Source: Macrostomum lignano (Eukaryota). Taken from it: a stretch of DNA of 64,000 bases. The stretch spans positions 1 to 64,000 of the forward strand of contig NIVC01001246.1 in assembly GCA_002269645.1 (NCBI GenBank), in the 5' to 3' direction. The notes beneath the pieces were generated by a model that was not told the origin of the DNA, ran no database searches, and saw only the letters and a program-made list of their open reading frames with translations. Positions 44 through 52,700 of the stretch are shown here, one piece after another; positions within the stretch are counted from its first letter, which is position 1, and the number at the start of each line of letters is the position of its first letter. The translations under genes were made by a program, and so were the position numbers.

Positions 44-783
44 TACCTTTTCAAGCTGGACTTTGGCAAAAGTGACTTCAATTTTGGTAGCCTATAGAAA
101 AAGCATACGCCTGCCAGCAAAATGTCTATGGTCAACTGTGGTAGAATCGGTTAAAGCGTGCATTCAACTTTGGCAAAAGTGAGCGAATTTGGCAACACAA
201 TAAACTGAACGGAAAACGGTAACAAACGAATTCCAGTGCTCATGCACTCGCCGAACGTCCTTCAGCGTGATGTACAGAGTACAGTCCAGGCGACGGCTGA
301 TTGCCTGCACCGACACGCCAGGTGCGCCTGGAAGTTCGGCTTCCATCTTCTCCTTCATCTCCCTCAACGTTATGGTGGGCTTCTCTTCAACAAACCGAGT
401 CACAGCATTTAACATTGGTGGTGTAAATTTTGGCCTCACGGCTCCTCCTCGTTGCTTCAGCGCAACGCGATCTTCAGTGACAAACCTGTGGATAATTGTG
501 TCGGCCGTGGTTCTCTTTATGTCGAGGTCCTTCGCCAGTCGTCTCCAGTCTCTTCCTTCTTGGTAGCTGCGCACCAGCCGTTCTCGATCCTGCAGCGATA
601 TACGCGCGTTCGGCATCTTGTTCGGTTGAGTTGCCAAAATTCGCTCACTTTTGCCAAAGTTGAATGCACGCTTTAACCGATTCTACCACAGTTGACCATA
701 GACATGTTGCTGGCAGGCGTATGCTTTTTCTATGGGCTGCCAAAATTGAAGTCACTTTTGCCAAAGTCGAGCTTGAAAAGGTA
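44..783 (-). mobile_element. Non-autonomous IS630/Tc1/mariner-type DNA transposon (deletion derivative), ~153-bp TIRs, TA target duplication
   Basis: 44-196 and 630-783 are near-perfect inverted repeats beginning TACCTTTTCAAGC, flanked by TA at 42-43 and 784-785. Each TIR carries a 16-bp internal direct repeat ACTTTGGCAAAAGTGA (60-75, 167-182). The interior encodes a transposase N-terminus. Confidence 0.9.
197..616 (-). pseudogene. Truncated Tc1/IS630-like transposase, HTH DNA-binding region only
   Basis: ATG at 616 gives MPNARISLQDRERLVRSYQEGRDWRRLAKDLDIKRTTADTIIHRFVTEDRVALKQRGG...ITLKDVRR. This is collinear with the N-terminus of the full transposase at 1612-2670 and runs into the TIR before any DDE residue. 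Confidence 0.85.
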
Positions 784-964
784 TATAAACTCGTGCCCTC
801 TGTGGCTCTTTACTTCCTCGTCAAGTGTTTGTATGCGCAGCATGTCCCAGAATGACCATGGACAATTCCATGCCCATGCCCCTTTCCACGCTGCGTAGGT
901 GTCTAAAGCACAGTCAGTAACAGGTATAGATAGCAACCACGAGCTTCCAACAGACCGCTCACTC

Positions 965-1200
965 GTCGAGGCATTCCCGAACAAGGCGCCGCAGAAAGTA
1001 TTGTGGAAGCTGTTGCCATGCGACTGAAAGCGCATTGCGCAGCTGGACCACGTTCTAGGAGGATAGAGATTGTTGCACCGAATCGTGCGCTTCAGGAAAT
1101 CCCACACGTCGTCAATCGGGTTCATATCGAGTGATCTGGACGGCTAACGCAGAGTGCGCCAATCAGTCATTTAGCGGACTATCGTTGTCACCTGCGTGCA
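965..1200 (-). mobile_element. Degenerate C-terminal fragment of a classical Tc1 transposase
   Basis: Minus strand reads PSRSLDMNPIDDVWDFLKRTIR...VQLRNALSVAWQQLPQ (frameshifted), matching the Tc1 motif WPxxSPDLNPIExxWxxLKRxI. Confidence 0.7.
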
Positions 1201-1409
1201 GATGCCTCCAGTAAACCCCTGTACACTCGTTACTGTAACGTCTTTACACTTTTCTGCCCTTTTTGCTCATTTGTCTATGGCCCAAAACCAATTGGCGAAA
1301 TCATCGATCATGCTGCCCATGGACCCTTGGCGCAAGGGTGGACACTTGAATGTTGCTGAGTGTTTTTACTAATTGTGTAGCGAGCTACCTTACCAGTAAT
1401 CAATAAATA

Positions 1410-2828
1410 TTCCTTTTTACGTTCTATTTGATAAAAACTGCAACCAATTTGGCCACGGCTCAGCCTGACGCAGCCGCAGCAATTTTCCATAGACAGCCAC
1501 CGCTAGCGGCAACCAATTTGGTAAAAACTGCGAGCTATTTTGCCAGCTTGAAGATAGCAGCTCAATAGCATAACAATAACGATAAAGAATGTTAACAATA
1601 CATGCACGAAGTCAGAACATTATGTCCTCAGCATTCAAGCACCGATTGAAGTACGTCTGGGAATGGTTGATCCAGCGCAGGCACTTAAGAGGCGTGATGC
1701 AGTTCAGTGCTTGCTGCACTTCTCTCTTCAGAATGCGCATCCTGTGCTGATGCAGTGTCGCACCTGCTGCAGCAGCCAGTCCAGTATCTGCCACCTCGCG
1801 CTGAATGGCAGGTGATTGCAATTGCGTTTTCAGCTTGGCCTTCAGCGCTGAGCCTGCGTACTCCGCCGAGTTGATGAACGGCGAGTATGGAGGCAGGAAT
1901 CGGTGAGCATGACCTTCAGACATCCCAGAAACACCTAGGTGAGCGCGAGCCCCATCGGACAGTAGCACAAACTCCTCTTCCATCAGAACATCGATCTCAG
2001 AGAGGAATTCCATGAAGTGCTCGTTCTTAAAGCCTCCTTCGACGAGAGTGCTGTGAATCAGGCCGAGTTGCGAGATGGCCAGGCAGATGGTGAGATTCTG
2101 CCCACGCTGTCCGCTGACGACAGTCACAGCTGGGAGCCCCTTCGCTGAGCGGCCTTGAGTCCTCGCCGTCCAGATGTTCACCCCAAACTCGTCCATGAAG
2201 ATGGTGTTCACCTGGCTTCCCTCGTCCAGCATCCATTCAACGTGCATCCTTCGCGCCTCCTTTGTAACAGGCATGTTCCAGTTCACAGGTACCTGGCGCA
2301 GTAACTTCAGGGTGATGAGGCGACCATCCAGAGCACGACTGATAGTGGTCAGACTCACGTTGGCAGCGTCATTGTGTTGGTGCAGCAGGTGCTCTCTCAT
2401 TTGTTGCAGCGTCGCAGTAGGTTGACCTTCGACGAATTGAACAATGGTGTCCACCATAGCCTCCGTCAGCGCCATCCTCTTCACTCCTCCTTTTGGCAGA
2501 GTGCCAACTCTACCAGTTCGTTCATACGTGGTCACGATGTTCCTCACTGTCGGTTTCTTCATCCCCATCATTCTGCCAAGCTCTCCCCAGTCGTCGCCAC
2601 TCCTGTACGCTCTCACGATTCGCTCTCGATCCAGCTGACTTATCTTTTGGTATGGCCCACGATTCGCCATCAGAGCAGCTGCTATCTTCAAGCTGGCAAA
2701 ATAGCTCGCAGTTTTTACCAAATTGGTTGCCGCTAGCGTGGCTGTCTATGGAAAATTCTATGTCTATGGTCAGGCTGAGCCGTGGCCAAATTGGTTGCAG
2801 TTTTTATCAAATAGAACGTAAAAAGGTA
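1410..2828 (-). mobile_element. Full-length IS630/Tc1/mariner-type transposon, ~150-bp TIRs, TA target duplication
   Basis: TIRs at 1410-1561 and 2678-2828 (terminus T[A/T]CCTTTTTACG), with TA at 1408-09 and 2829-30. Encloses an uninterrupted transposase ORF. Confidence 0.92.
1612..2670 (-). CDS. DDE transposase (IS630/Tc1-like), 352 aa, D-D-30-E catalytic spacing
   Basis: ATG at 2670 (MANRGPYQKIS). Has an N-terminal HTH, then motifs FMDEFG (D1), LLSDGARAH (D2) and FLPPYSPFINSAE (E). No stops or frameshifts. Confidence 0.92.
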   Translation of the reverse strand: MANRGPYQKISQLDRERIVRAYRSGDDWGELGRMMGMKKPTVRNIVTTYERTGRVGTLPKGGVKRMALTEAMVDTIVQFVEGQPTATLQQMREHLLHQHNDAANVSLTTISRALDGRLITLKLLRQVPVNWNMPVTKEARRMHVEWMLDEGSQVNTIFMDEFGVNIWTARTQGRSAKGLPAVTVVSGQRGQNLTICLAISQLGLIHSTLVEGGFKNEHFMEFLSEIDVLMEEEFVLLSDGARAHLGVSGMSEGHAHRFLPPYSPFINSAEYAGSALKAKLKTQLQSPAIQREVADTGLAAAAGATLHQHRMRILKREVQQALNCITPLKCLRWINHSQTYFNRCLNAEDIMF

Positions 2829-3203: not shown

Positions 3204-4103
<900 letters not shown>

Positions 4104-4189
4104 ATCCGTTCATTCGTTTAGAAAAAAAACTGGAGTAGTTATCCTTTGTAACCATGGGCTACAAAATTCTAATCAATCGTCTTTCTCAG

Positions 4190-5365: not shown

Positions 5366-5667
5366 GTGAGTATGATGCTGCTGCTCAGAATGTGTCAGCC
5401 TGGCTTTTTTAATTGATTTCGATGAATCCGAAAAAAGTTAAAAAGTGTTTTTTTATTGTTGAGTTGATCCACGGAGCATTTTAGTTGATTCCAGACGTAG
5501 TTTCTTTGGATCAATGACTAGTTGATTAGTCCATTGTCCATTGTCCTGTTATTTTATTAGAAGTCGAGCTTGAAGTTTTTCTATATATAATTGCTTTTAT
5601 AAGTCAAGTTGATAAAAAGCCAGTCAGTTGAATGGCTTCATTAAAAATCATTCAAGCAAAGAAATCA

Positions 5668-6473
5668 TGCAGTTCTGTGGCCGGGCTTTGATTGGCTTTA
5701 TTATCTATGGCCGAGTGCAGTTCTGTGGCAGTGTGGCTTTGATTGGCTTTATTGTCTATGGCCGAGTGCAGTTCTGTGGCAGTGGCTTTGATTGGCTTTA
5801 TTGTCTATGGCCGAGTGCAGCTCTGTGGCAGTGGCTTTGATTGGCTTTATTGTCTATGGCCGAGTGCAGTTCTGTGGCAGTGGCTTTGATTGGCTTTATT
5901 GTCTATGGCCGAGTGCAGTTCTGTGGCAGTGGCTTTGATTGGCTTTATTGTCTATGGCCAAGTGCAGCTCTGTGGCAGTGGCTTTGATTGGCTTTATTGT
6001 CTATGGCCGAGTGCAGTTCTGTGGCAGTGGCTTTGATTGGCTCTATTGTCTATGGCCGAGTGCAGTTCTGTGGCAGTGGCTTTGATTGGCTTTATTGTCT
6101 ATGGCCGAGTGCAGCTCTGTGGCAGTGGCTTTGATTGGCTTTATTGTCTATGGCCGAGTGCAGTTCTGTGGCAGTGGCTTTGATTAGCTTTATTGTCTAT
6201 GGCCGAGTGCAGGTCTGTGGCAGTGTGGCTTTGATTGGCTTTATTGTCTATGGCCGAGTGCAGTTCTGTGGCAGTGGCTTTGATTGGCTTTATTGTCTAT
6301 GGCCGAGTGCAGTTCTGTGGCAGTGGCTTTGATTGGCTTTATTGTCTATGGCCGAGTGCAGTTCTGTGGCAGTGGCTTTGATTAGCTTTATTGTCTATGG
6401 CCGAGTGCAGTTCTGTGGCAGTGGCTTTGATTAGCTTTATTGTCTATGGCCGAGTGCAGTTCTGTGGCAGTGG
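5668..6473. repeat. 49-bp tandem satellite, ~16 copies
   Basis: Unit GCCGAGTGCAGTTCTGTGGCAGTGGCTTTGATTGGCTTTATTGTCTATG, nearly identical copies with no spacers. Confidence 0.97.
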
Positions 6474-10100: not shown

Positions 10101-12127
10101 ATATACATTAGAAAGCTTAAATAGAATGTGAAGATAATGAAGAGAAATCACTAATCGCTAATCCCAAAGTACTTTTAGGGGTAAAACGCATAGCTGTCAA
10201 AGCTGTCACACGCTTTAGTGAACACGAACAATAGGCTCTGACCTCATAAATCTTGATGGCCTGTCAAAATGATCAGAAAAAAGCTACCGCCCGCATCCTC
10301 TCAGACCATCTGGCGTCCGCCTCAACACTGAGTGAGGCGCAGGTGGCTGTCAGACCAGCTTCGAAAGCGATGATTTATGACCCAAAAAGCTGCGCCTATG
10401 TTATTATGACTACTAGTATGACCAAACATTATATCTAGTATAGATTCTATGACAATTCGCAGAAAAAGGATAAAAATGCCCATTGCCCACTGTTAGTAGG
10501 CTGATAAGTTTAGAGCCCATGTGCTAGCGCGGGATTTGGAAAAAGTGCGTCCTCATCAGTCGTATCGCACTTCACTCCATAGCCGGTGCATAGAGGTGTT
10601 GCTGCTGACGCTGCAGGCACAGGATCTTTGAGGGCAGGTGGACACAAGTCATTTCGTTGCTCAGATTCCGTCAGCCGCGTGGCCTAAGTTCAACATTGTG
10701 ACAGCGTACTTGGGGGTTGCAAACGTTTGCTTTATCCCCTCCAATGCTTTCTATTTTCAGGTCAGTCCAAAGTGGAGCAGCTCCAAGCAGCTGCAGGGCC
10801 TCGTCTTTCAGCTGCAGGACGCCTCTGAGAGACCCGGCAGTGCCGCATCAACCGCTTCAGCTTCCGCTGGCCGAAAAAAGTCCAAAAAGTCCTCACGACG
10901 GGTGATGATCAGTTATAACCACGGCAGCAAGGCGGCTGTTGAACGACTTTACAACCTGCTCACGGAGGCTCAGGTAGACATCTGGGTCGATTTCAAAGAC
11001 ATGAAGAGTGGCTCGGTGTATCAGGCGATGGCGAATGGAATTGAAGGCTCAAGTGTTGTGCTCATGTGCATCACCCGGTTGTACAACGAGAGCAACAACT
11101 GTCGATTGGGTATGTTGAAAACGATGGCAGATTTTTCAAGGTTTACAACGGTACAACGTATATAACAAAGTGAATTTTTTGCCTCGTAAAATACGTAAGC
11201 GTTTACCACAGGTAACACAGGGCCGCTAAATAGAATGATACCACACTTCATTTAAGCACATCCTTTTACAATATTTTCACGCTTTGATTTGTACTTCAAC
11301 GATGAATTTGTAGTAATTCGCTCTAAATATTCATAGAGGCTAACCAGTAAGAGAAGTACATGCAGTTATAACAAATTTGAAACCGGGTTGCTTTCATAAG
11401 ACCGAAATTTTACATCGCAGAATACTTTCTATAATAAGGACCATGCCATCTCGGTATTGGGACCTTGATCCCGTCCTACCTCTACTCATAGACCTGTACT
11501 ATTTTGACGCATCTAATCTATTGACGTAGAATGCTCTAATTGTTCTCAGAGGTGGAGTACGCGCACGAGTGCGGCAAGAAGCTCATCCCGCTGCTGCTGG
11601 AGCCCAAGTACCGGACCAATGGTTGGCTCGGCTTTCTGACTCTAGCTGAGCTGCGCTACGACCTCACTGAGACAAAGTGCTCATTTGAGAGCAAAGTACA
11701 AGAGCTGCTGGTGGCGCTGCAGAGCCACTTCAACCAGTTGGACAGCGGCGTGACGTGTCGGTCGGGTTCGGCTGTCGGCAGTCAGCGTCGGGGGCACGAA
11801 ACGCCGTCGCAGCCGCCGGTGCTGCCTCCGATTGTGTCGCAGCAGCAGCATCAGCAACTGCAACTGCAGCAATCAACCCGTCGATTGGCCTCTTCAGTTC
11901 GAGCATGGGACGCCGAGAAGGTCACCGCCTGGTGCCGGGAACACGGACTGCCAGCGGAAATCACCGAACGCGGAATGTCCGGCTTAGAGCTGCAGTTTCT
12001 GGCCCGCACTCTGGCCCGCTCGCCCGAGTACTTCGGTCGAGTTCTCGAACGGCACTTCGGTTTGAGCAAACTGCTAGATTTGGCCGCCTTTGTAACGGCG
12101 ATCGAGGAATTACAGGACTGCGAGTAA
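7111..12127 (+). CDS. ARM-repeat / TIR (TIR_2-type) / SAM-like domain protein; exons ~7111-7733 (1-bp frameshift near 7362), 8179-8341, 8498-8700, 10761-11109, 11550-12127
   Basis: All junctions are GT-AG and in phase. ARM-like segments include IRRLALNDSNKDLL and EGIEILFTLSF. TIR motifs: RRVMISYNHGSK, DIWVDFKDM, AMANGIEGSSVVLMCIT, NCRL|EVEYA, LIPLLLE..Y...GWLG. C-terminal VRAWDAEKVTAWC...MSGLEL is SAM-like. Confidence 0.85.
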
Positions 12128-12560: not shown

Positions 12561-12934
12561 CGTTCGCACTTGGCCCTTAGACGCCCCTGTGACGCTGACT
12601 GTGTATTTTGTGGTTAAACAGCTATGTCTGTCAAGCTTTGGATGATTTTCTAGTAAAGTAAATGGTTCAATCTTGTGATTAAATGCGTACACTAGAGGAA
12701 CTCTGGAACTTTTTCATAATTTGCCACGTTTTATCAATGTTGCACACAGAATGGAGATCTACACCCACACCCTCAGAGAACAAGACTACAATTCGCATCG
12801 TTACATATGAGTAGAATTTCTCGGAAACAAAATTCGATTAAGCAAACATATCCGGATAACATATGCGATCTAAATGAACCCAATAGTAAACTTAAAAAAA
12901 CAAAATGCGAATTCGAATCAAGAACTACCCAAGT

Positions 12935-13500
12935 AGATCAAGGACGGGAAAATACGTTTCTTGGAAATTTTGAAGGCGGGTTTTACCGGAAAATCTATTA
13001 GCTACGGAGAATGGAGTGTTTCTTTTTTTCAGCACAAAAAATTTATTGCTTTCGATAGGAGGCAGACCCAATGTTTATCTGGTGATATGACTTGCCTTTC
13101 TCATAGCTCTATTTGATATTACGTAGTAGAGCTTTCTTTAAAAATAAAAGGCTTTAAAAGCTAATATATATAGGCCATATTTATGAGAGAAACTTAGCCT
13201 CAGTCAATATTGTCTCATTTTTCTGAATATTTGTATTATCTTAGTTAAAATCGATTTTGGTATAAAATCAACAAGATAAGCCTGATAAAGATTCATAAAA
13301 GGAATGAATCTGAATCAAATTGTGTCATTTTTGTATGATTTTTAGCAACAAGAAATCCTAATTTTCTAAACAAAAAACTCTACAAATATCAATATACTAC
13401 AATACTAGTTTTGAAAGCAACTACAGATTTTTGCTGGAAAATGAAAATCTCCATTCTGAAAATATTCTAGAAAAATAGCATTTCTTGCTTGCAGCGGTGT
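12935..13500. mobile_element. Diverged copy of the foldback/MITE family at 31974-32670
   Basis: Shares blocks such as TTTTTCAGCACAAAAA, GATAGGAGGCAGA and AAAGCAACTACA with both arms of the 32-kb element. Confidence 0.65.
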
Positions 13501-17400: not shown

Positions 17401-19009
17401 TCCGCCCCTTCTAACCCCATCACTCTCTGCCCCTTCTAACCCCACCACTCTCTGCCCCTTCTAATCCCATCACTCTCCGCCCCTTCTAACCACATCACTC
17501 TCCGCCCCTTCTAACCCCACCACTCTCCGCCCCTTCTAACCCCATCCCTCTCCGCCCCTTCTAACCCCATCACTCTCCGCCCCTTCTAACCCCATCACTC
17601 TCTGCCCCTTCTAACCCCACCACTCTCTGCCCCTTCTAATCCCATCCCTCTCCGCCCCTTCTAACCCCATCACTCTCCGCCCCTTCTAACCCCACCACTC
17701 TCTACCTCTTCTAACCCCGCTTTACGCTTTACCCCTTTAACTACAACATGAATATCCTTGAATTGGAGTTTGGCAACGAAATGAAATTCCTCACTTCTAT
17801 CTTTACAGTCGAGAACAAGCAGAAAAGGAAAAGGCTGAACTGGAGAGAACGCTTGAAGAATTGAAAACTACCATCAGCAACGAGACTACAGAGTAAGGGA
17901 ACGAAAAAATTGGGTATAATTAAATTTTGCTAGAGTAAATTAAATTCATCATGCGTGATATTAAACCGTTCAGAAAATTCAATGCAATGGCAGTCAAACA
18001 TCTGGCTTTGCTGGAGAGGCACCAGAGCCTGCGAGAGCAGCTAAGTTCTATGACGATCGGAAATGGCGGAGTTAGATGTGTCAGGTGAGGTGTCTTGTCA
18101 GACAACAGGTCAGAAAGGCAAAGCCACTGATCTATACGCTTAATTCCTAAATCCCTCTATCGCAACGCCTTCGGCAACATCATTCTGCTGACTCCTGAAC
18201 ACATACAAGCTAAGCCAATACTGTACACAGGCACGCACTGATGTACACGCTCACACGGGGTGTACAGCGGCCCTGACTGTCTAATCGTAGGCATGTACAC
18301 TCTCTGTGCCTTAATGATTGAGAACGGCTGTTCAGTTCAAGGACTGGGTGGTCGCCACACACACCCTCAATTACCCCAGCTAATGCTGGCAGCCATTTTA
18401 CAGCTGGGTGAACCGAAGCAATGCAGAGTTAAGTGTCTTGCTTAAGGACACAAATTGTTCCAGTGGGATCAGGAATCGAACCCCGACCTTCAAGTCGTGA
18501 GTCCGACGCTCTAACCACTAGGCTAAAACCCCCAGTGAAAAACCACAAGCTACAGTCTGTGTAGCCATTTTGAATGCCTAAGTGTTCAGACACAGATTAA
18601 ATGCTCCACCCGCAGCCCTGCAGAACAACATCAACAGCAGCAGCAGCAGAAGCCACAAGCAATCGAAGGTCGACAAGGTCCAGAACACGACAAAGACCGC
18701 GAGATCCAACAGCTGAAACAGGAAATTGGCCAGTTAAAACAGAGCGAAAAGGAACTATCAGACCGCTGCAGCGAGTGCAATAGAATTGTCAACGAAGTGA
18801 TTGCCGAGTCTGAAAAGGTCAAATATCAGCTTATGACTGAGCGAAACAGGCTGCTAGCCGACCAAAAGGAGGCCATTAGCGACTATGCTGACAAGATGAA
18901 GGAGAAGGCGAGAGCCGAGCTGCGACTGCGCGACCAAATTCGAGACCTGACAAAGCAGCTGGACGAGATGAAGCGGCATTCCGCGCCTGAGAGAAGTCGC
19001 AAGTATTGA
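14490..19009 (+). CDS. Orphan coiled-coil protein, 344 aa; exons 14490-14734, 16214-16525, 17809-17892, 18616-19009
   Basis: Four GT-AG exons, all phase-2 junctions, total 1035 nt from ATG to TGA. Heptad-rich E/K/Q/R/L composition with no recognisable domain. Confidence 0.85.
14847..15725. repeat. Intronic ~19-25-bp minisatellite (GCTACCCATTTGACGTTT variants)
   Basis: Directly visible; the unit type changes gradually along the array. Confidence 0.96.
16621..17718. repeat. Intronic 25-bp minisatellite (CCCCTTCTAACCCCACCACTCTCTG), ~43 copies
   Basis: Directly visible, with extreme C/G strand asymmetry. Confidence 0.97.
18326..18533 (-). mobile_element. tRNA-derived SINE, copy 1 (3' truncated)
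   Basis: Minus strand has an A-box TAGCCTAGTGGTTAGAGCG, a B-box GGTTCGATTCC, and the body GTGTCCTTAAGCAAGACACTTAAC...CACCCAGCTGTAAAATGG shared with copies 2 and 3. Confidence 0.85.
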
Positions 19010-19110: not shown

Positions 19111-19410
19111 ATAATTGATTACACCTGCCCCAATTGGGCCAGATGTGCAACCGACAGCTCAGCCGCAGCTATTGCGCGGCGCATCTGAAGGCTGCGTAAG
19201 GCTGTTCAGTCCAAGGACTGGGGGGTCGCCACACGCACCCTCAATTACCCCAGCTGATGCTGGCACCCATTTAACAGCTGGGTGAACTGAAAAAATGAAG
19301 AGCTTAGTGTTTTGCTCAAGGGCACAAATTGTTCCAGTGGGATCGGGAATCGAACCCACGACCTTCAAGTCGTGAGTCCCACGCTCCAACCACTAGGCTA
19401 CAAACCCCAC
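19111..19410 (-). mobile_element. tRNA-derived SINE, copy 2 (full length, ~300 bp)
   Basis: Same pol III head and body, with 3' end GGGCAGGTGTAATCAATTATT. Confidence 0.88.
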
Positions 19411-20342
19411 TGATAGCCTCAGAAAGGCTTTTGGAATGAAGACCTTATCGAAAACATAGTTGAACATATAACACATTTGTTAAACTTCTCTCGCAGCTCA
19501 TACCAAACTGACCCATAAGGTAGTGTAAAAATGTTCCAATTTGAAATAAAATGGCAAAATAATACCTGTTTATTCATTATTGATTTCATTTTAAACACTT
19601 GTGTTATGAATCTCACTTATGTCAGTTAAATGCGAGTTAAACTTAATGAAAGTCTGATGAAATCTAGCACAAACAACAACGTTTCTATATAAGTTTTCTT
19701 GTCTTTTGTCTTTTGTCTTTTTCAAAAGTGAGAAAAGTACTTCAAAATATTTCTATTGTTCTACTTATACGCTACAGTAGTACCCTTAGAGAATTTTCTT
19801 GCTTGCCGTTTCAAATTAAGTTTTATTTTGTTTTTTAGGTAAGCCTGCATTTCTTTTAGCCTGCAATACTAAAAATCTGCCTTTTTACCTTGGTGGCTGA
19901 ATTGGTTTGTCCTCTTGAACTTCAGTTCCAAGACGGTGTCTTCCATTGCTCATAGCATATCATAACTAAAGTCTAGGCAAATGTCAAGAGTATAAATCAT
20001 GTCGTACAAACAAAAATGAGGTTCCTCTTTGCACCCTGCCAAAAAGTTGATCAGTACAGCCCACCGAGCATCATATATACGATCTCTGAGTGGCGCTATG
20101 CAAACACAGACTGCCTACTCTTGCCAACCTCATTCTCCGTATCTTTGTACACTTTGGTAGGGCTTACTCTGAGTGTGAAGAGTCTCAAGATACTCGAAAT
20201 ATTAATTAATAAAACAAAACCCAGGGAAGCTTTTCAATTTCGGATTCCGTCGCCTGCGTAAGCTGGCATGGTGTGCTCAAAGCTGGAAATTTGAAGTGCA
20301 ATTGATATCCGCACCTGGAGAGCGTGGAGAGCGCAGTGGATT

Positions 20343-28978: not shown

Positions 28979-31319
28979 TCAGGATCCCTCTTCCAGTGCC
29001 ACAATGACAGTCATCTCGCGCTGAACGGTCAGCTCCATTCGCCAGCTCTGGTATCGGCGCCAGCAGGTGGCGGCTCCGTAGACAATCCAGATGATGACGC
29101 CAACGCTGACGAAGCCCGTCAGCAGTTCGAAGAGCACCAGCTGATAGCCGTTGCTCTGCTTCGTCTCTTCCTGGCGTAGGTCGGCGATAAAAAAGATGAG
29201 CACACCGATTAGCGGAACCGCCACGGCCAAGCAGCATATTGTGACAGCCAGACAGCAGACCTGACGAAAAAATTCAGTCAAAAAAGCAAAACTTTTCAAC
29301 TTATCGAAGCTCATTGTTGAAAAAGTTGAGCATCTCATTCTGTAGCTTCACACGGGGTCAATTTGTGACGTACAGCTGCCCTGACTAACTCACTGTCAGG
29401 CAGTTAACTGTTGCGTCGAGTCATCCCATTTTTTAATTGTGGATGAACTGCAGTTCTAGGAAAAATAGGAAAGAAAAGCTTGAATTTCAAAATATCAAAT
29501 ATCACGGGTCGAGTCGGTCGCGCTTATTGAGCATCTTGAGCATCTGGCAAAGCTTTTACAGCTTCTGAAACTGTCTTTTTGTAAATCCTCACTAGTTGCT
29601 ATGCCGCTAATTCCTTGTCCGGTCGTATTCTACGACAGCTTCTTAAACCTAGTGATTTATAATATACCTTTTCCACTCCAAGTCTGTCACAAGTAACTTC
29701 AAATCTGCCGTAGATAGCAGAAAGGCATACATTCAGCTCGCAAGCCGAGCGCCAACTTAATAGTCTATGGTTAAAGCTCAGATCAATTCTGTCAAAAGTA
29801 ATTTCAAATCTGTCTACTGAACAGATAACGAAACAAAGGTTTATTTTGAACAGTGCTCTCAAATTAAAGCAACAAATTCTGTAATTCACTATGCTAACAT
29901 GTCTGCTACAGTCAATCAGTTGCATAGATATTTCAAACAAAAATATCGCGACGATCCAAGCAGGCCTGTCCGTAACTCAACGTGTGCAGGTGCCATCGTA
30001 GGCAGTGGTCATGTGTCAGATGAGGCATGCTGGCATGCAATTCGCGAATCAGAATGCTCAGTCTGAATGCTTTAGGATCAAGTTTGCGGTGGTCCTTTTG
30101 ATTCCGAGGTCAATGGCCAGTCTCCTCCAGTCCCGTCCAGTGTTGTAGCTGTTAACCAGGCGCTGCCTGTCTATTAAGCATATTCTTGCATAGGGCATGG
30201 TGGGTAAGGCAAGAAAAAATTGTTGTGAACTCGCGTTGCTGTCAACATATATATCTCTGACAGATTTGAAGTTACTTGTGACAGAATTTATATATAAGAT
30301 TGCCATAGACGAATAAGTTTCACTGTTAAAATCTGGGTCTGTCTATAAAGAAGTTTTCTAGTCTTTACTGCTTTGGTTCCAACTCCCTATCTGTTCAGTG
30401 GACAGATTTGAAATTACTTTTGACAGAATTGATCTGAGCTTTTACCATAGACTATTAAGCTGGCGCTCGGCTTGCGAGCTGAATGTATGCCTTTCTGCTA
30501 TCTACGGCAGATTTGAAGTTACTTGTGACAGACTTGGAGTGGAAAAGGTATAGTACGAGTACAATAGTCTAGACGTTACACAAGTACTACGTACGTTTTC
30601 TGCTGAGTTGAGACCAGCTGACCTTAAATCTTCCTTTGCTCAAACCGCCACCTAAAAAGAATAAAATCATTTAAAGTAAAGCAAAAAAGTGCAATTTTCA
30701 CCTGGTCCAGTTGTCGCAGCCATGTACACCAGTTCGGTGCCACAGTCGACCCATCAGCGGATGCTTCGCCCTGCGCGGCCGTGGTGGCAGCCTCTGCTGC
30801 GGCTTCGCTCCTGGCGGCGGCGGCAGCTGCGGCGGCATCGGCGGCCGCCTGCGCCAGCTCCGGCATCAGCTGCTGGTCGCACTGACGCAGATCAAAGCCG
30901 CACAGTTCGCACCTGTGCTTGCGGCTGAGCTGCAGCCAGCGAGTTAAACAGCCGGGGTGCACCAGGCCCATCGTGCCTTTGCAGAGGCAGGGACCGACGA
31001 GCGACTCGCCGACCCGATGATCGTCCGCTTGGTCGCTGCAGTTCAAGGACAGCGACCGGCCGCCGAGGCAGTAGCGACAGTGCGGACTGGAGAAGCTGCT
31101 GCCAATGAAAACTGCTGCCGGTGTGCCGCCGGCCTGAGACTGCACGAGCTGCTGACGGAATCGCCGGTCGCTGTTGTTCGAGCTGATGTGATACTCAGGG
31201 TTGTTATTGTCACTGACAGGCGAAGACTGCGACGGTTCTGCATCGGCAGCATCTAAGCTCAAGGCCACGATAGGCGAAGAAGTATTGGGTAAAGTGTCCT
31301 GCAGTAAGGGGTTGTACAT
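28979..31319 (-). CDS. MARCH-family membrane RING-CH E3 ubiquitin ligase, 299 aa; exons 31319-30702 and 29260-28979
   Basis: C4HC3 RINGv CRYC...PCLCKGTMGLVHPGCLTRW...CELC. A phase-0 GT-AG splice (LDQ|VCCL) joins it to an exon with two hydrophobic TM helices, the canonical MARCH layout. Confidence 0.88.
29665..30550 (-). mobile_element. Non-autonomous Tc1/IS630-type element in the MARCH intron, ~163-bp TIRs, TA duplication
   Basis: TA|TACCTTTTCCACTCC...GGAGTGGAAAAGGTA|TA; TIRs 29665-29827 and 30388-30550. Interior MPYARICLIDRQRLVNSYNTGRDWRRLAIDLGIKRTTAN is close to the remnant at 197-616. Confidence 0.9.
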
Positions 31320-31973
31320 TTGCTCGCTTTGTCCTCTGTTCTGTTTGCAAGGTCAGAACTCCGATCCAGCACTTAGCGCTCGTAGACCCGTCAGTTAAGT
31401 TAATTGGTTCAAGTTTCACAGACTTCACAGCCTTGGCATCACATCGCCATCAGTCGTTATCTAAAAAGGCTAAATTTCGTTTCGACACAACTTGTACACC
31501 TTTTTCCATGGCTCTGTGCATTAGCCAGTGTAACTTGAATGTTTCAATTGGTTGAATCAAGCATGCAATTTAGTTGGAGCCTACCTATCGTACATACCAA
31601 CGCTCTGCCTACCGTCTCAGCTCAGCCCTTCTAGCTTTTTGACACTGTACAACCTCAATAAACTGATGCGTGGCGAGACTAACACAGTACACTGTACCAG
31701 CCAATCACAAATCATGAATTGTGTCTGCACATGATAAATCATTACTTCTTGGTGAAAGTCTTCAATTAAAATATGCTTCGTAAATAAACTTGAGCGTAGT
31801 GTGCCAGTGTTGCAGTCTCAGTCAGCTTACTATTGAGCAATGCCTTGTTGACCATTCAAATACAAGACTGGACACATTTCATAGGTAAAACGTTGAATTA
31901 ATCAGCTGTACAAGCTAATTATACTCTCTAAAACAAAAATACTGCATACAAACGTAGCTAAATGTATATTGCA

Positions 31974-32670
31974 AGGACTACTTAAGTAAATACGGGAAAC
32001 CTCGTTACCTGGAAACTTTTTGAAGGCAGGTTTTCCTAAAAAAATACACTACGGAGATAGGAAGTTTTCATTTTTTCAGCACAAAAATTGCTATTGCTTT
32101 TGATAGGAGGCAGATCCAGTGTTCATCTTTTGATATTTTGTGCCTTTCTTATTGCTCTATCGATATTCATAAAGCTAATTGTCGTTTAGAAAATTAGGAT
32201 TTTTTGTTTATCTTTTATTCTACGTACATTTGCACGTGTCTTGTGCCTAAAAATCATTAAAATGGCACGGCTCAGCTCTGGTATTATGAATATATTTTAT
32301 CATTCTTAGCTGACTGAGTAACAAATATGCGTAGCAGAAATGATAAAATAGATTCATAAAATCAAGGATTGGAGCTGCGCAATGCATTTTTATGATTTTT
32401 AGGTACAGGAAATGTACGTAGAATAAAAAGTTAATATACTCGTAGAATCCAAAGTTTCTAAACGAAAAGCTTTATGAATATCGATGGAGCAATAAGAAAG
32501 GCACAACATATCAAAAGATGAACACTGGATCTGCCTCCTATCAAAAGCAACTACAACTTTTGTGCTGAAAAAATGAAAACTTCCTATCTCCGTAGTGTAC
32601 TTTTTCGGAAAAGCCTGCCTTCAAAAAATTTCCAGGAAACGAGGTTTCCCGTCTTTACTTAAGTCGTCCT
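31974..32670. mobile_element. Foldback/MITE with ~260-bp imperfect TIRs
   Basis: 31974-~32235 is the reverse complement of ~32405-32670 (AGGACxACTTAAGTAAAxACGGGAAACCTCG...). Confidence 0.85.
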
Positions 32671-33183: not shown

Positions 33184-33924
33184 TCACAGGAAATAACGCC
33201 ACTTGATAATATCAGTAGCTTCCAGATCGTGTTTCAATTTCTTGTTTTCGGTGTCGCGACTGAAGAATACGCCGCATGTGGGCTTCTGGAAGGTCCGGAA
33301 CGGAGCAACGTCGTTCTTCTCGCGCTCGCTCTCCGTGAAGAAGCTGCTGCCTTCCAGGGAGGGCAGCAGAGCGCCAAGCGGCGTGGGCTCCGGCAGTCGC
33401 TGACCTACCGGTTGAAAGTCCAGCACCCGGCAGACGTTGTAACGTCTGGACAGTTTGCTGCTCAAGCCCATCTGGTGCAGCCGCATGTGCTCGAGACGTT
33501 GCCAGCTTCGGAGTCGCGGATCCGGGTTGAAGCTGAACACCATTGGTGTTCGATCTACTAGAAGTGGCTGCTTAGCCCTTTGCTGGCGTTTCTGCTGCTG
33601 CTGCGGCTTCGAAAGCGTTGTAGCCTGCGGTGCCTGCGCACCGGACACGGCAGTCTTCGGGCGAGCGGATAACAGCCGCTGAGATGATGCCGACGCAGCT
33701 GCTGTTGCAGGACGTTGTTGCGTCTGTTGCTGAGGCGTCTTTGGAGAGCTTCTAGAGGAGATGGGACGCTGCTGCTCTTGCTGCTGTTGAGGTGTCTTCG
33801 GAGTAGTGGGCTTCGCACAGCTGCCTGACGATACGGGCCGCTGTTGTGGCGTCTTTGGCGGTTCGACCGGCTCGACACTTGCAGGAACGTCTTCCGTCTG
33901 GGTCCCAGTCTCAAGTTGTTGCAT
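33184..33924 (-). CDS. Orphan protein, 246 aa (low-complexity P/Q/S/T N-half, ordered C-half)
   Basis: GC-rich, coding-like single ORF from ATG to TGA. No family recognised, and upstream exons cannot be excluded. Confidence 0.6.
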   Translation of the reverse strand: MQQLETGTQTEDVPASVEPVEPPKTPQQRPVSSGSCAKPTTPKTPQQQQEQQRPISSRSSPKTPQQQTQQRPATAAASASSQRLLSARPKTAVSGAQAPQATTLSKPQQQQKRQQRAKQPLLVDRTPMVFSFNPDPRLRSWQRLEHMRLHQMGLSSKLSRRYNVCRVLDFQPVGQRLPEPTPLGALLPSLEGSSFFTESEREKNDVAPFRTFQKPTCGVFFSRDTENKKLKHDLEATDIIKWRYFL

Positions 33925-40789: not shown

Positions 40790-45609
<4,820 letters not shown>

Positions 45610-49802: not shown

Positions 49803-50239
49803 GAGACGCAACTAAATCAAGTATGAAGTGCAAGAAGAAAAACTAACTTTGTATCTGCGTAGAAGCTATGCCCATCTTAGTACAGTAAGTTTTGACTCCG
49901 CAAAAAGGATTCTTCAAAGTTTTCTTGTGCTTTAACTTTTTTTCATTTTGCCTGTCGATTAAAATAATATTTACAAATTTTCCCGCAAGAACAATTTGTC
50001 CTATCATAGAAATCGTTTCAAACAATTTTTGTATTTAGCACCCAGAAGTGTTACTAATTTTTTTTCAATTACAGATGTTCCGTCGATAGTTGAGTTCAAG
50101 AAATACAAGTTTGCATTTCCGATTTTAGTGTCGATCTCCGACTGCTTTTTAGAGCAGAGGTGAGTGCACTCTCTAATCGACGGTTTCAAGGATCCACTTG
50201 GGGAAATAATGCGAAAGCTATCCTGCATGTGTTCCTCCA

Positions 50240-50400
50240 ACAGTCCTTAGTGAATAATTCAGCGACGAGGTCAACTTCCGCGAACGTTAGGCCGTCTAGA
50301 ATATCGACGGGACGGTTACCATGGTGTTGCAACCTGACACCGGTAACCAGTTTGATCCATCTTCTCGATGCTCCGTCGTCTGCTCCGTCAACTGCTAGTT
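50240..50400 (-). mobile_element. Short LINE ORF2 fragment
   Basis: HHGNRPVDILDGLTFAEVD aligns at DNA and protein level with HLGNRP..IDILNGQTSAKVD at ~63080-63150. Confidence 0.45.
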
Positions 50401-50637
50401 CACAGTTGGTTGACTAGCTGTCTAGCCCTCATTTTACAGTGCGTGACAATCAAAATCATTCTAATAAAAGACAATGATTTCAAAGTCTCCTTTCACCCGT
50501 TCTATGGTAATTACGCGGGATACTTTTTATCTAGCTATGGTTAAAATGCGATACAATGACGATCTAGGACGTACCACACATACTCGTATCATATTATAGC
50601 ATATAGCTATAGCATATCATAGAAGTCAATTCAGGTT

Positions 50638-52700
50638 TATTGTCATAGACTATGTCTGTGTGACAAGCAAACTCAGACTGCAAGCACGCAATCTCAGCCA
50701 AATCATGGTTGCAACAATGTAATATTCCTGCACGAAATTCCTGCACAATGTAATATTTGCGTGTAGGAAAATCATTGTCTTTTGACCATAGACAAAGTCA
50801 TTCCTGCACGGTTTTCGAGAAACGTTAAGAAGAGATGAAAATTGAGTGGAGAGTTTATAGAAAAGTGTATAAAGCTTATTGACTATGGCGTCTGTAATCG
50901 ACTCGGCTCTGAATCCTCCATTAATTGATTTTCGCTACGCTACGGTGTCTGGATTAAGTGGCGACGAAATGTTTATTGAAAGTGTGTCCAGCAACTTTGA
51001 GAGGACGGGCGACGATTTGACTGCACTGATAGCGGATTGCACGTTCAGCGAGGAATTAGAGAAACTTTTCAGCTCGGATCCGGAAACCTTGTGTAACCTT
51101 GACGAATTGGAAAGTCTGGCCGCTCAACTGGAACGCGACAACGAATGTCATTCGACTGTCTCTAAGGAGAAAGCTGTGATCAACCGCTTGACGGCCTGGT
51201 TGGCGGAGAATAATTTAAAAGTGGATTACGCGACTGCTTCGGTGGAAGAAATTTCCAAATGGGTCCGCTACTTCTATGCGACTCTGCGTAAGTCAGACGG
51301 CAGCTTCTATTCGCCGAATACAGTCGTAGGAATTCGAGCCGCACTGTTCAGGTACTTTATGAAATTACGTGGCCTCAATATCATCGCTCACGAGGCTTTT
51401 CATAGCGCGAATTTGATGGTGAAGAATGTTTGCAATGCGTATTTGAAGTCCGGTGGTCGAGTGCAGCATTACGAAGCCATTGAGTCGGACGACCTTGTCA
51501 AGCTTGCTTCTTACTTCGACAGAAGCACTCCAACACGTTTGCTAGAAGAGGTATATTTCAATGTGTTATTTTATTTCGGCAATCGCGGCAGAGAATGGCT
51601 ACGAGGTCTCACTGTTCGTTCATTCCGAGAGAAGGCCCTATCAAACGGAGCAATGGCGATCGAGTTGCAAGGCAGCACCTCAAAGAATGTAAAAGGCTCG
51701 AGTGACATGCGACTCTGCGACGACAATAAACAGGCCTTGATGGTGGCCAAGCCGGAGTCAAGGCACTGTCCAGTTCAGGCCTTCCAGCTTTATTTGTCGA
51801 AAATTACTGCCGTGCCGGGTTGGAATCAGGAGGACTTCTTTCTGCGTCCGAAACCACGAGTGAATGCGGATGGCATCTGGTACACCAAAGTACCAGTTGG
51901 AATCAACACTTTGGGGCCGTTGCTCAAGAAGATCTCTTCGAATGCTAACCTGTCCAAGCTGTACACTCTGCATTGTGTGCGACCTACAGTTGTTACGGAG
52001 CTGCATGAAGCTGGCTTTTCTGTCGAAAAAATTGCGAAGGTGACAGGTCACAAGGTGAGCAATTCTTTATTCTTAGTAAGTTTATTGACACATGGACAAG
52101 GAATTTATTAAACACCACCTCTATTCACAGAATAGCGCGTCGGTAGAACGATACATCCGGAGAGGCAAGAAGAGGGACTCGATCATGGCAGGGATGAGTG
52201 ATCAGCTGACAGTCGCTCTAGCTGGAACTATGCCGGCACCAAGTTCTACATTGAGCGAAGCTCCTGCAAGGGCTGTTACGACTACCGACCCGTGCGGATC
52301 AGCGTCAATGTCAACTGTCAAGAAGTCACTGGTTGTTGAAGAATCGACCACCACACTTGTAGCAGCCCCCACTAAGCGGATGAAGATTTTGGCAAACGGC
52401 GAAACGAATGTTGTGCAGTTTATTTTCGAGTAAATGCCGAGAGGGGTGTGAGTAGGTCTATAGACTCATTAACTGTTTCCCTAGTTCCACTTATTATCCT
52501 TTTTGTTCTTCCATATTGTTATTGATTACATATTCAGTTGCTTCTAAAAATAAACTGTTAAATCGTGCAGGAATGACTTCATTCCTGCACGATAAGCTAA
52601 CGTATGTCAAGTGATTTCTACCATAGACACAGACATTCCTGCACGATAATAAATCGAAAAAATCATTCCTGCACGCTGTGGTCAAACGACAATGACAATA
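50638..52700 (+). mobile_element. Crypton-type tyrosine-recombinase DNA transposon with complex terminal repeats
   Basis: The YR gene is flanked by 25-bp direct repeats (50786-50810, 52621-52645), multiple TTCCTGCAC motifs, and outer inverted TATTGTCAT/ATGACAATA. The exact termini are inferred. Confidence 0.8.
50885..52433 (+). CDS. Crypton (CryptonA/DUF3504-like) tyrosine recombinase, 490 aa; exons 50885-52054 and 52131-52433
   Basis: Core-binding region (FYATLRKSDGSFYSPNTVVGIRAALFRY) and catalytic set R (GNRGRE), K (TSKN), HxxR (LHCVR), GH (TGHK). A 76-nt phase-0 GT-AG intron brings in the nucleophile Tyr (K|NSASVERY). Confidence 0.92.

Follow-up and report, generated by a model that had tools for sequence, protein, structure and literature searches.

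Sites for IHF (and for HU/Fis) are found in lambda attP, in IS10/Tn10 and at the ends of Mu, where one host factor is reused by tyrosine-recombinase (YR) and DDE systems. The IHF-type sites lie close to the ends and between the sites bound by the recombinase, at a distance from where cleavage or crossover takes place. Eukaryotic DNA transposons have few host cofactors, most of which lack sequence specificity, and to our knowledge nothing is known about the cis-requirements or cofactors of Cryptons, the mechanism of which is still a model only. Here we analyzed a stretch of 64,000 nt from Macrostomum lignano (the window), in which the octamer CCATAGAC recurs in Tc1-like (DDE) elements and in a Crypton (YR). 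It resembles the bacterial IHF sites in being one candidate factor site with a similar placement in YR and DDE elements. However, IHF is a known bacterial factor with degenerate sites, while the octamer is eukaryotic and has a strictly invariant 8-bp core.

Sleeping Beauty (SB) and the M. lignano elements carrying the octamer are both of the Tc1-like IR-DR type. In SB, each IR of ~100-230 bp has two transposase-binding DRs, and host-assisted bending of the IR is required for ordered synapsis (PMC5224488, PMC7827188); folding of the ends is needed in IR/DR elements and is assisted by a host bending factor (PMC5224488). In contrast to the octamer, HMGB1 is recruited by the SB transposase and is not sequence-specific, and SB is without a conserved inter-DR motif in both IRs. 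SB also has HDR, a transpositional enhancer in the left IR only, which resembles half a DR and is bound by the PAI subdomain (PMC5224488). HDR and the HMGXB4 motif are, like the octamer, extra cis-motifs in a Tc1-like IR, and they raise transposition or transposase expression, HDR via the transposase and the HMGXB4 motif via a host factor (PMC5224488, PMC10138897). Both are restricted to the left IR, whereas the octamer occurs in both IRs and in either orientation, differs from the DRs and is also present in a non-DDE transposon. An SB-type HDR enhancer was rejected for the octamer, since both IRs carry it and, being unlike the DR sequences, it is not an HDR-like half-site.

Terminal direct repeats of 4-6 bp are known from Cryptons, and their terminal structure was termed variable or poorly conserved (PMC3212892, PMC13465315). 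The Crypton of the window resembles CryptonA (Kojima and Jurka, 2011, PMC3212892; the Glomhopper paper, PMC13465315) in its DUF3504-like YR with an intact catalytic set, its lack of TIRs and LTRs, and its 6-bp terminal direct repeats matching the target. It differs in its subterminal regions, where a conserved octamer is embedded in arrays of recombinase-binding-like repeats, an arrangement not described in PMC3212892 and PMC13465315. A physical association of Crypton and Tc1/mariner is documented for MarCry-1_FO, in which a Crypton and a mariner-type transposon are fused into one element with TIRs, TA TSDs and both genes (PMC3212892). While MarCry-1_FO is one composite, the two M. lignano classes are separate elements with only a site of ~15 bp in common. 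A MarCry-type composite was rejected for the element at 50714-52694, which has the YR gene only, no TIRs and ACAATG ends.

Enrichment of the octamer

The octamer had 30 exact matches in the window, 15 in a 49-bp satellite and 15 outside it, against 1.20 +/- 0.99 (maximum 4) expected from dinucleotide shuffles. An excess outside the satellite had been claimed in a sequence-only reading of this DNA and is confirmed; all positions listed there were exact matches, one of which starts at 30445 and not at 30444. Once repeat copies had been collapsed, the 15 non-satellite matches were reduced to about 8-9 contexts of independent sequence. All canonical 8-mers of the window were scanned without bias, independent contexts being compared with a Markov expectation, and the octamer ranked 4th of 32,896 (9 contexts vs ~1.0 expected, p~1e-6), which is no more than borderline when multiple testing within the window is considered. 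The pre-specified replication in other M. lignano loci was strong, with 20 matches in 26 kb and a 20-fold enrichment. With the satellite masked, 35 matches vs 1.74 expected were counted across 90 kb of M. lignano DNA, in which the single-base variants were near expectation (24/24 at <=3.8x). Among 32 independent contexts, the flanks preferred T at -4/-3, R at -1 and A at +1 to +3, as would be expected of a binding site.

As had been largely anticipated, every octamer of the window lay in mobile DNA, because the 'orphan' at 1273 belongs to a putative Tc1/mariner remnant and the satellite is located inside a Tc1-like TIR. No host gene in the window had an octamer nearby. Element G (another TIR superfamily), a tRNA-SINE family and other repeats in the window were without it, which speaks for class specificity.

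Tc1-like elements of the window

44-783, minus strand: Tc1-like element A, a deletion derivative; TA at 42-43 and 784-785; terminus TACCTTTTCAAGC
164-637, minus strand: truncated, HTH-only transposase ORF of element A, 39% identical to the DNA-binding domain of B
124-131 and 696-703: octamers of element A, reading GTCTATGG inward, between DRo and DRi
730-1405, minus strand: degraded remnant, putatively Tc1/mariner, with the 'orphan' octamer at 1273-1280
1410-2828, minus strand: autonomous Tc1-like element B, TA-flanked; termini TTCC/TACCTTTTTACG
1612-2721, minus strand: transposase ORF of element B (DDE_3 7.9e-14, HTH_SB, HTH_32, PAX)
1487-1494 (one arm), 2744-2751 and 2762-2769 (other arm): octamers of element B, reading CCATAGAC inward
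5591-6473, minus strand: Tc1-like TIR with satellite; terminus TTGCTTTT at 5591; C-like DR GATAAAAAGCCAGTCAGTTG
26949-27340, no strand: Tc1-like MITE C, TA-flanked; terminus TTGGTTTTGTCAGCC; octamers 27048-27055 and 27233-27240
27555-28260, no strand: Tc1-like MITE D, TA-flanked; terminus TTGCTTT; octamers 27632-27639 and 28176-28183
29665-30550, no strand: Tc1-like MITE E, TA-flanked; terminus TACCTTTTCCACTCC; octamers 29763-29770 and 30445-30452

Elements A-E are all flanked by TA at both ends, and their TIRs measure 91-168 nt with 91-100% complementarity. Their common features are the TA TSD, the terminus T[AT][CG][CG]TTTT, the IR-DR layout and a bipartite DR scaffold. All five belong to a single clade of the Tc1-like IR-DR type, within which the transposases have diverged. 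They had been described as five different elements with otherwise dissimilar TIRs and different termini, a description that does not hold given their common terminus, TSD and DR scaffold.

The transposase of element B is of the DDE type and has a paired-like (PAI/RED) HTH domain at its N-terminus; in element A only the HTH part is present, and the MITEs C, D and E are non-coding. Residues D177, D256 and E287 of the B transposase were invariant in 23 homologs, and a PDB search matched it to the SB PAI subdomain and the PAX6 paired domain. The DR of element A is ACTTTGGCAAAAGTGA with a period of 107, and its TIR arms of 150 nt are 97% complementary. Insertion of element A interrupted the 3' part of the remnant at 730-1405. 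This remnant had no Pfam match at E<=0.01, and its assignment to Tc1/mariner is inferred from the translation of its ORF (730-1125), which begins ...SLDMNPIDDVWDFLKR, a transposase C-terminal catalytic motif. The octamer of MITE C lies within the near-palindrome GTCTATGAGCCATAGAC in each arm. In MITE D the octamers read GTCTATGG inward, and the arms are 91% complementary with zero mismatches in the octamer. MITE E has a third octamer (30303-30310) in an internal partial duplicate of the DR and octamer module (30252-30317).

Conservation of the octamer among Tc1-like elements

In all families each arm has its DR in duplicate (identity 11-16/16, period ~90-122 bp), and the DRs are putatively bound by the transposase. 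In families A-E and in the elements L003, L004 and L090, the octamer was located between DRo and DRi at 60-113 bp from the terminus, and it was likewise present in the Tc1-like families F and H. The earlier observation that it lies inside both TIRs of the five elements, at ~60-100 bp, is borne out for both arms with this range. The octamer was kept in Tc1 relatives with transposases 44-70% identical, the TIRs of which otherwise keep the terminus and the DR scaffold only. It was conserved in both arms despite diverged surroundings, including in relatives with transposases only 44-52% identical. The two arms of L090 are identical for the first ~46 bp only and then completely diverged; each has the octamer, at 113 and 67 bp from the terminus and with different flanks. 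The diverged arms of L004 also each retain it, and so do the non-coding MITEs C, D, E and F. The diverged arms and the MITEs suggest that the octamer may be needed at both Tc1 ends, and its conservation on the Tc1 side is attributable to descent plus selection.

The octamer of A, D, E and F is flipped relative to that of B, C, L003, L004 and L090, and would thus work in either orientation. It is sometimes doubled (B, C, H and L001). Its distance to the DRs varied from 10 to 98 bp; therefore, strict helical phasing is absent on the Tc1 side, which counts against the accessory-factor reading proposed below. No octamer (0 in 163 kb) was found in 80 metagenomic Tc1 relatives at a greater distance.

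The Crypton and its composite sites

50714-52694, plus strand: CryptonA-type element, bounded by ACAATG at 50714-50719 and 52689-52694
50885 (ATG) to 52431-52433 (stop), plus strand: YR gene with intron 52055-52130; intact model of 491 aa
50760-50811, plus strand: 5' composite site, with degenerate inverted RBE CGTGTAGGAA at 50760 and octamer 50786-50793
50800-50810, plus strand: 5' RBE ATTCCTGCACG, separated from the octamer by a 6-bp spacer; more RBEs at 50724 and 50737
52565-52676, plus strand: 3' composite site, with octamer 52621-52628, 6-bp spacer and RBE 52635-52645
52564-52591, plus strand: 3' RBE palindrome CGTGCAGGAATGA-CT-TCATTCCTGCACG; one further RBE at 52665

The YR protein (DUF3504, 1e-10) is 98% identical to an M. 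lignano protein. Its catalytic set is R..K..HxxR..H..Y; RGREW, K, HxxR and GHK were invariant among the members, and RY was conserved in those extending that far. A second copy in L005 is 99% identical over 50756-52694. No terminal inverted repeats were found in the Crypton, the ends of which are 6-bp ACAATG direct repeats, present at both ends of two independent insertions (window and L005). The uninterrupted paralogous arm in L005 serves as the empty site and reads ...ACAGACAATGgaaac..., which puts the junction at (G)ACAATG. The octamers lie 72 bp (5') and 66 bp (3') inside these ends, in 31-bp direct repeats. The suggestion that the octamer is the core of the Crypton terminal direct repeats was thus correct as to the repeats; however, these are subterminal, and ACAATG forms the true ends.

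A Crypton-specific repeat, A[AT]T[CT][CT]TGCACG (the putative RBE), follows at 6 bp from the octamer. All independent Crypton sites (5/5) had CCATAGAC-N12-GCACG, for which the background is 0.0008 per offset, and GCACG was found within 40 bp downstream of 0/51 non-Crypton octamers. Family 1 (window and L005) and family 2 (L006), which are 57% identical overall and 63% over the conserved recombinase core, have the octamer at both the 5' and 3' ends. Two Crypton relatives from other samples (L093 and L008) have it at the 5' side. The hosts of the positive contigs from outside M. lignano may be Macrostomum-like, as suggested by a GC of 0.49-0.51 and a shared repeat fragment in the flank of L090.

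The L005 Crypton is located inside an inverted-repeat element carrying octamers, 39 bp from an octamer in the target. The window Crypton is not inserted in a TIR element and its flanks are without an exact octamer, so an octamer near the target was seen in 1/2 insertions, a number (n=2) that is uninformative.

Comparison of the two classes

The similarity between Crypton ends and Tc1 TIRs is confined to the octamer site, at most 17-18 bp. The longest match, TTTTGACCATAGACAAA, was found between the Crypton 5' end and the L090 TIR. Since the similarity is limited to the site itself, no fragment was captured, which favours independent retention of one candidate binding site. A cis-element common to the Tc1-like and Crypton classes had been proposed, and it stands, being conserved across deep protein divergence while the non-coding surroundings diverged. 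The further proposal of a convergent host-factor or promoter site is favoured by the site-only similarity, but five-fold convergence on the Tc1 side is not, as the positive Tc1 elements are one subclade. The positive Cryptons are likewise one clade; therefore, there is essentially one evolutionary origin in each class, n=2 in total, which weakens the accessory-factor reading.

A candidate accessory-factor site and alternative explanations

We propose, with a probability of about 0.4, that TTKR-CCATAGAC-AAA is a functional protein-recognition site selected in the subterminal regions of two unrelated Macrostomum transposon lineages. The common site of ~15 bp near both ends of Tc1-like and Crypton elements suggests one common DNA-binding factor, and a trans-acting protein acting on both classes is probably host-encoded. 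This protein would bind the octamer site as an accessory or architectural factor and assist in folding the end, with its multiple sites, so that an active complex forms. At both ends the octamer is placed between DRs (Tc1) or flanked by RBE-like repeats (Crypton). On the Tc1 side the factor would occupy the spacer between the outer and inner putative transposase-binding DRs and promote the transpososome. On the Crypton side it would be bound at 66-72 bp from the ACAATG crossover in both directions, in an attP-like intasome at the circle junction. The existence, enrichment, placement, conservation and composite spacing of the octamer are observed, whereas protein binding, host encoding and the architectural role are all inferred; such a factor would be analogous to IHF at IS10, Mu and lambda attP and to HMGB1 at the SB IR/DRs. 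The narrower idea of a sequence-specific architectural protein of Macrostomum, IHF-like in function, whose ~15-bp site TTKRCCATAGACAAA was independently built into the folded multi-site ends of DDE and YR elements and which, by tethering, could also bias Crypton integration in favour of DNA with octamers, is possible but doubtful.

Vectors based on heterologous transposons reportedly did not integrate by transposition in M. lignano, a regeneration model capable of transgenesis (PMC5730564). Native elements in which a candidate accessory site is mapped could be of use in building vectors that work. An invariant site common to DDE and YR elements gives a direct handle on the candidate factor (as a 15-17-mer bait), and the octamer is a defined mutation target for probing the assembly of Crypton and IR-DR ends.

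Convergent acquisition of transcription-factor sites by unrelated TEs is well known, and the main rival to the accessory-factor reading takes the octamer as a host transcription-factor or promoter element for transposase and recombinase expression, used for example by a germline or neoblast factor. Both TE classes would have converged, and the symmetry of TIRs or direct repeats would account for the copy at the second end as a side effect. A promoter role fits equally well with an octamer lying 30-180 bp upstream of the ATG in every autonomous element, in sense orientation in 7/8 cases (Tc1-like: B about 70-95 bp, L001 81/181, L003 95, L004 159, L090 75; Cryptons: family 1 99 bp, family 2 31/141 bp, L093 153 bp). 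The SB promoter is also located in the left IR, with a response motif for host HMGXB4 leading to germinal stem cell expression (PMC10138897). Nevertheless, we regard this explanation as rather unlikely: the 3' arm keeps the octamer even where it diverged from the 5' arm (L090, L004), non-coding MITEs retain it, and in element A it is flipped relative to the ORF. Moreover, the Crypton 3' octamer lies downstream of the stop codon, the host genes of the window have none nearby, and the strict spacing of N12 that separates octamer and Crypton repeat resembles a feature of a recombination complex. That spacing, fixed across Cryptons down to 45% YR identity, could also mean that the Crypton protein itself reads the octamer. 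Its N-terminal domain and the YR core-binding domain might recognize the 25-bp CCATAGAC-N6-RBE, or the octamer might be the target of a conserved region in the Tc1-like transposase, with cross-mobilisation, competition or tethering between the classes. The insertion at 39 bp from a target octamer and the existence of Crypton-mariner associations such as MarCry (PMC3212892) agree with recognition by a TE-encoded protein. However, no Crypton RBE stands beside Tc1 octamers (0/51), Crypton ends have no Tc1-type DRs, and the flanks of the window Crypton have no exact octamer. The octamer is also kept in many Tc1 families whose DR specificities differ, a pattern that points to a factor varying independently of the transposase. 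We therefore hold a TE-encoded reader to be quite improbable.

Passive inheritance of the Tc1 copies from one ancestral TIR, with the Crypton copies due to coincidence or an old captured TIR fragment, would agree with the single Tc1 subclade and with the young age of the TE copies in the window (arms 91-98% identical). Such an absence of function is very improbable, given that 8/8 octamer bases are invariant where TIR spacers diverged beyond alignment between families, that diverged arms keep the octamer independently, that the octamer is conserved in two Crypton families and two distant relatives, in a composite of fixed spacing, and that the cross-class sequence ends at 17-18 bp. The sequence-only reading had also offered the octamer as a tyrosine-recombinase target, at which Cryptons would integrate into TIR elements and reshuffle them; the 31-bp direct repeats near both Crypton ends and the location of the L005 copy could be read in this way. 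This is scarcely credible, because two independent insertions are alike well past the octamers and as far as ACAATG on either side, the empty site has its junction at (G)ACAATG, and the window Crypton is not in a TIR element. The Crypton flanks, which were to be checked for insertion at the octamer, have ACAATG junctions, with a target octamer of L005 39 bp away. The octamer is not the crossover point, and a lox/FRT/att-type YR core site was rejected for it at 72 and 66 bp inside the boundaries.

Amplification of the octamer in a satellite

The 49-bp satellite array (5668-6473) consists of 16.4 units with 15 exact octamers. It is the amplified octamer-bearing spacer of a Tc1-like TIR, and its unit matches family C over GCCATAGACAATAAAG(+). 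TE amplification can thus spread one small motif through the genome and even seed a satellite.

Frequency and context of the octamer

The octamer CCATAGAC/GTCTATGG was detected in 30 copies in the 64-kb window, 15 within the 49-bp satellite (5668-6473) and 15 outside it, against 1.2 +/- 1.0 copies (maximum 4) in dinucleotide shuffles. All positions listed in the sequence-only reading were recovered, one of them shifted from 30444 to 30445. The 15 non-satellite copies were distributed over eight to nine unrelated contexts as judged by their oriented flanks, some being the two arms of one element. As a guard against cherry-picking, all canonical 8-mers were scored by independent contexts against a Markov expectation. 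CCATAGAC ranked fourth among 32,896 (9 contexts versus about 1, p~1e-6), and this window-only enrichment was borderline after multiple testing. In a pre-specified replication, other M. lignano loci chosen for unrelated reasons (26 kb) were found to contain 20 copies. With the satellite masked, 90 kb of M. lignano DNA contained 35 octamers against 1.74 expected, while each of the 24 single-base variants was at most 3.8-fold over expectation. The extended consensus from 32 independent contexts was TTKR-CCATAGAC-AAA.

The octamers of the window all appear to belong to Tc1-like DNA or to the Crypton, since the orphan copy at 1273 and the satellite could also be traced to Tc1-like DNA. The orphan adjoins a remnant ORF beginning ...MNPIDDVWDFLKR, a Tc1/mariner C-terminal motif. 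The satellite lies immediately within a TIR of the C/D kind, marked by a terminus at 5591 and a direct repeat (DR); around the octamer, the satellite unit agrees with family C.

Tc1-like elements

Tc1-like elements of the window
44-783: element A, HTH part alone left (39% identity to that of B), terminus TACCTTTTC
1410-2828: element B, complete Tc1-like transposase with DDE_3 and paired-like HTH domains, termini TTCC/TACCTTTTT
26949-27340: element C, non-coding MITE, terminus TTGGTTTTG
27555-28260: element D, non-coding MITE, terminus TTGCTTT
29665-30550: element E, non-coding MITE, terminus TACCTTTTC

Each of the five elements has TA on both sides, and in the transposase of B the residues D177, D256 and E287 were invariant among 23 homologs. 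The elements had been described as five different ones. They have in common an IR-DR layout and a bipartite DR scaffold whose specificity-determining bases vary by family, and their similar termini, TA flanks and common scaffold indicate diverged members of one clade rather than unrelated elements. The arms of B differ by a patch of about 11 bp (2752-2769 versus 1469-1486, GCAGCCGCAGC versus CATAGACATAG), which creates a second octamer in one arm and looks like a conversion-type change rather than a point mutation.

Further Tc1-like MITE families
L005 6435-6674: family F, 240 bp, terminus TA/CACCTTTTCACG, one central octamer
L005 1-640 and L006 6495-7078: family H, terminus TA/TAGCATTTTCAAGC, two octamers per arm in opposite orientations

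Octamers at other loci with homologous transposases (transposase identity)
L001/L002: 70%, octamer in both arms
L003: 62%, octamer in one arm, the other arm decayed by one base
L090: 52%, octamer in both arms
L091: 50%, without octamer
L004: M. lignano paralog, 44%, octamer in both arms

In every family the octamer was located 60-113 bp from the terminus, with the outer DR on one side of it and the inner DR on the other. Both of its orientations relative to the terminus occur: B, C, L003, L004 and L090 have CCATAGAC, whereas A, D, E, F and H have GTCTATGG. The DRs keep one orientation across all families. The octamer is doubled in the second arm of B, in C (as a near-palindrome), in H and in L001. 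The arms of L090 are alike over the first ~46 bp only and then diverge completely; each diverged arm nevertheless keeps the octamer, at 113 and 67 bp and with different flanks, and L004 behaves similarly.

The 80 more distant metagenome relatives (24-49% identity) displayed the same terminus type, with no octamer in 163 kb. In a neighbour-joining tree all octamer-positive Tc1 elements and one negative (L091) formed one subclade, and the metagenome relatives in the tree all branched outside it, the three closest (L028, L013 and L020, 45-49%) being left out because their ORFs were too short. The grouping of the positives with L091 suggests, as the simplest history, that the octamer had one origin on the Tc1 side and was then strongly conserved while the remaining TIR diverged. 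An interim idea drawn from the absence of hits in the 80 relatives, that the motif tracks the host and not the transposase clade, was weakened by the tree and is not established.

Other repeats of the window were free of the octamer: several tandem arrays, a SINE family derived from tRNA and one TIR element that belongs to another superfamily.

Octamer-free repeat families
31972-32656 (~685 bp), solo arm at 12919-13120: TIR element of a different superfamily, arms beginning GGAC(T/G)ACTTAAGTAAA, serving as negative control
18326-18538, 19200-19413, 43892-44088, also L006 6861-7022: dispersed family with an inverted tRNA-like box B (GGAATCGAACC...), probably a tRNA-derived SINE

Crypton ends

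50714-52694, + strand: CryptonA-type element

The recombinase of this Crypton has 98% identity with a protein of M. lignano, its gene model is intact (491 aa, one intron) and the catalytic residues are kept. The window copy and that of L005 (together family fam1) are 99% identical over window positions 50756-52694, with a further common segment to the left, and both are bounded by ACAATG (50714-50719 and 52689-52694 in the window). L005 also holds an uninterrupted inverted paralog of the target (...cattaaaaACAGACAATGgaaac...), and its comparison with the occupied site (...cattaaaaACAATG[Crypton]...cgACAATGgaaac...) identifies ACAATG as the crossover or microhomology. Known Cryptons likewise end in direct repeats of 4-6 bp (PMC3212892, PMC13465315). 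The earlier proposal that the octamer is a tyrosine-recombinase target does not agree with this junction: located internally, 72 and 66 bp from the Crypton ends, the octamers are ruled out as the crossover site. Target preference refers to n=2 insertions.

The L005 Crypton interrupts an arm of an inverted-repeat element that is unclassified (3700-3781 plus 5859-5932 versus 6276-6400). The arms begin GCTGATCCAAATAAC, and the element has an octamer at a distance of 39 bp from the insertion. Compared with the uninterrupted arm, the junction is 4 bp short (ACAG/GACA).

On the presumed circular intermediate, the octamers would stand about equally far from the junction on either side, amid at least seven copies of ATTCCTGCACG, a predicted layout resembling attP.

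A second family (fam2, L006), with 57% identity to fam1 overall and 63% over the conserved core, has the octamer at both ends. Among relatives from other samples, L008 and L093 carry it upstream of the gene; the relatives L007, L009 and L094 are without it, and scans of genome contigs and viral contigs yielded no more Crypton relatives. GCACG starts exactly 12 bp after the octamer in 5/5 independent Crypton sites (fam1, fam2 and L093; background ~0.0008 per offset), compared with 0/51 non-Crypton octamers having GCACG within 40 bp downstream. The octamer in Cryptons is therefore half of a strictly spaced composite site, and our literature search found no description of Crypton subterminal composite sites.

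L005 and L006 have in common an extra 5' module of ~80 bp (aacgagtgcgtcaWtggcaaaagcacgagtgcgcgaagcgcacgagtgcNNtttgCCATAGACgcacgagtt), which holds one more octamer, surrounded by GCACGAGTGC repeats.

Crypton 5' module
L005 3800-3875 and L006 3805-3880: module present
Window ~50737-50759: module absent, its position taken by a short duplicated ATTCCTGCAC segment

The flanking DNA of L090, a Tc1 contig of foreign origin, also contains part of the module core (CACGAGTGCGCGA).

The site common to both transposon classes

Sensitive local alignment of all Crypton ends against all Tc1-like TIRs gave matches only centred on the octamer. The longest were 17-18 bp, such as TTTTGACCATAGACAAA, an exact match between the Crypton 5' end and the L090 TIR. 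Capture or exchange of a fragment between the two was rejected because similarity ends there, and together with the extended consensus this suggests that they have a site of ~15 bp in common. The claim of a cis-element shared by the two classes thus held for the Tc1-like and Crypton ends, but its five TIR elements count as one clade, and each class contributes essentially one evolutionary origin of the octamer. The positive contigs from outside M. lignano have a GC content of 0.49-0.51 versus 0.36-0.40 for most negatives, which, with the Crypton-module fragment in the L090 flank, only suggests Macrostomum-like hosts. Samples behind the Logan/ENA contigs include SRR22216445/49, SRR12900990, SRR22198272, SRR31628392 and ERZ27309178.

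A literature search for the octamer returned only primer matches, and the motif is not described in the paper on the genome and transgenesis of M. lignano. The papers searched contained no description of a sequence-specific site that Cryptons share with a clade of eukaryotic DDE transposons. Scanning the window for Rfam families and tRNAs gave no hits.

Possible function of the octamer

The invariant core with its flank preferences, its retention amid divergence, its position beside each class's own presumed recombinase-binding repeats and its presence at both ends point to a protein-recognition site, presumably under selection in both classes and read by one trans-acting factor. The identity of this factor does not seem to co-vary with transposase specificity, as many DR types accompany one octamer. 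Since the site also serves a tyrosine-recombinase element, a host protein would be the most economical candidate reader. Accessory host-factor sites are a known kind of feature in transposon ends. An accessory or architectural role is favoured, with a probability of roughly 40%, by the independent retention in diverged 3' arms, the persistence in non-coding MITEs, the copy downstream of the Crypton stop codon and the fixed spacing to a recombinase-type repeat in Cryptons. Each autonomous element also has an octamer 30-180 bp upstream of the ATG, so that a promoter or transcription factor site remains a strong competitor, if a less likely one. Likenesses to the transcription factor motifs Sox/HMG (ACAAAG after the core), Hox/Cdx, YY1 and SBE were considered, none of which appears to fit the invariant core. 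Sleeping Beauty is a direct precedent for both roles: the folding of its ends is aided by the bending cofactor HMGB1 (PMC5224488), and a host-factor response motif in its left IR, involving HMGXB4, activates transcription (PMC10138897).

Reading by a TE-encoded protein could account for the octamer-GCACG composite of Cryptons and is rather improbable beside the host protein. Passive inheritance plus coincidence is poorly supported and very unlikely, and the Crypton crossover target, with ACAATG at the boundaries, is the least credible of all. A half-DR of the HDR type was rejected, the octamer being unlike the DRs and found in both IRs. A 3' splice or trans-splice acceptor (TTTT..CCATAG/AC) is unlikely: YAG suffices for an acceptor, yet none of the eight bases varies, and families differ in the orientation of the octamer.

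Other features of the window

Host genes
22925-24289, +: Cys-loop ligand-gated channel, apparently intronless (Neur_chan_LBD 1e-36)
10638-11165, +: TIR-domain ORF
30624-31319, -: RING-variant ORF
33184-33924, -: exon of a CIMIP3-like ciliary protein

No octamer was located near these four genes. The most over-represented non-trivial 8-mer of the window was the near-palindrome TACGAGTA/TACTCGTA (TAC-NN-GTA), with 13 independent contexts versus 1.3 expected (p~2e-9).

Sites of TACGAGTA/TACTCGTA (15)
6712, 6912, 15904, 27466, 30554, 32437, 32882, 40648, 41545, 43175, 46539, 50581, 54978, 56538, 59371

In contrast to CCATAGAC, this 8-mer is dispersed through single-copy DNA that is mostly intergenic, frequently within ~70-300 bp of ORF ends, and is a candidate host regulatory motif.

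Very long pure microsatellites
3225-4103: (GTTA)220
42252-42876: (CTA)208
52933-53318: (TAG)129, beginning ~240 bp downstream of the Crypton

A segmental duplication of ~1.4 kb (53326-54745 and 58628-60199, 72-81% identity) carries paralogous coiled-coil ORFs at 54044-55075 and 59465-60559, with a third partial copy at 63183-63735.
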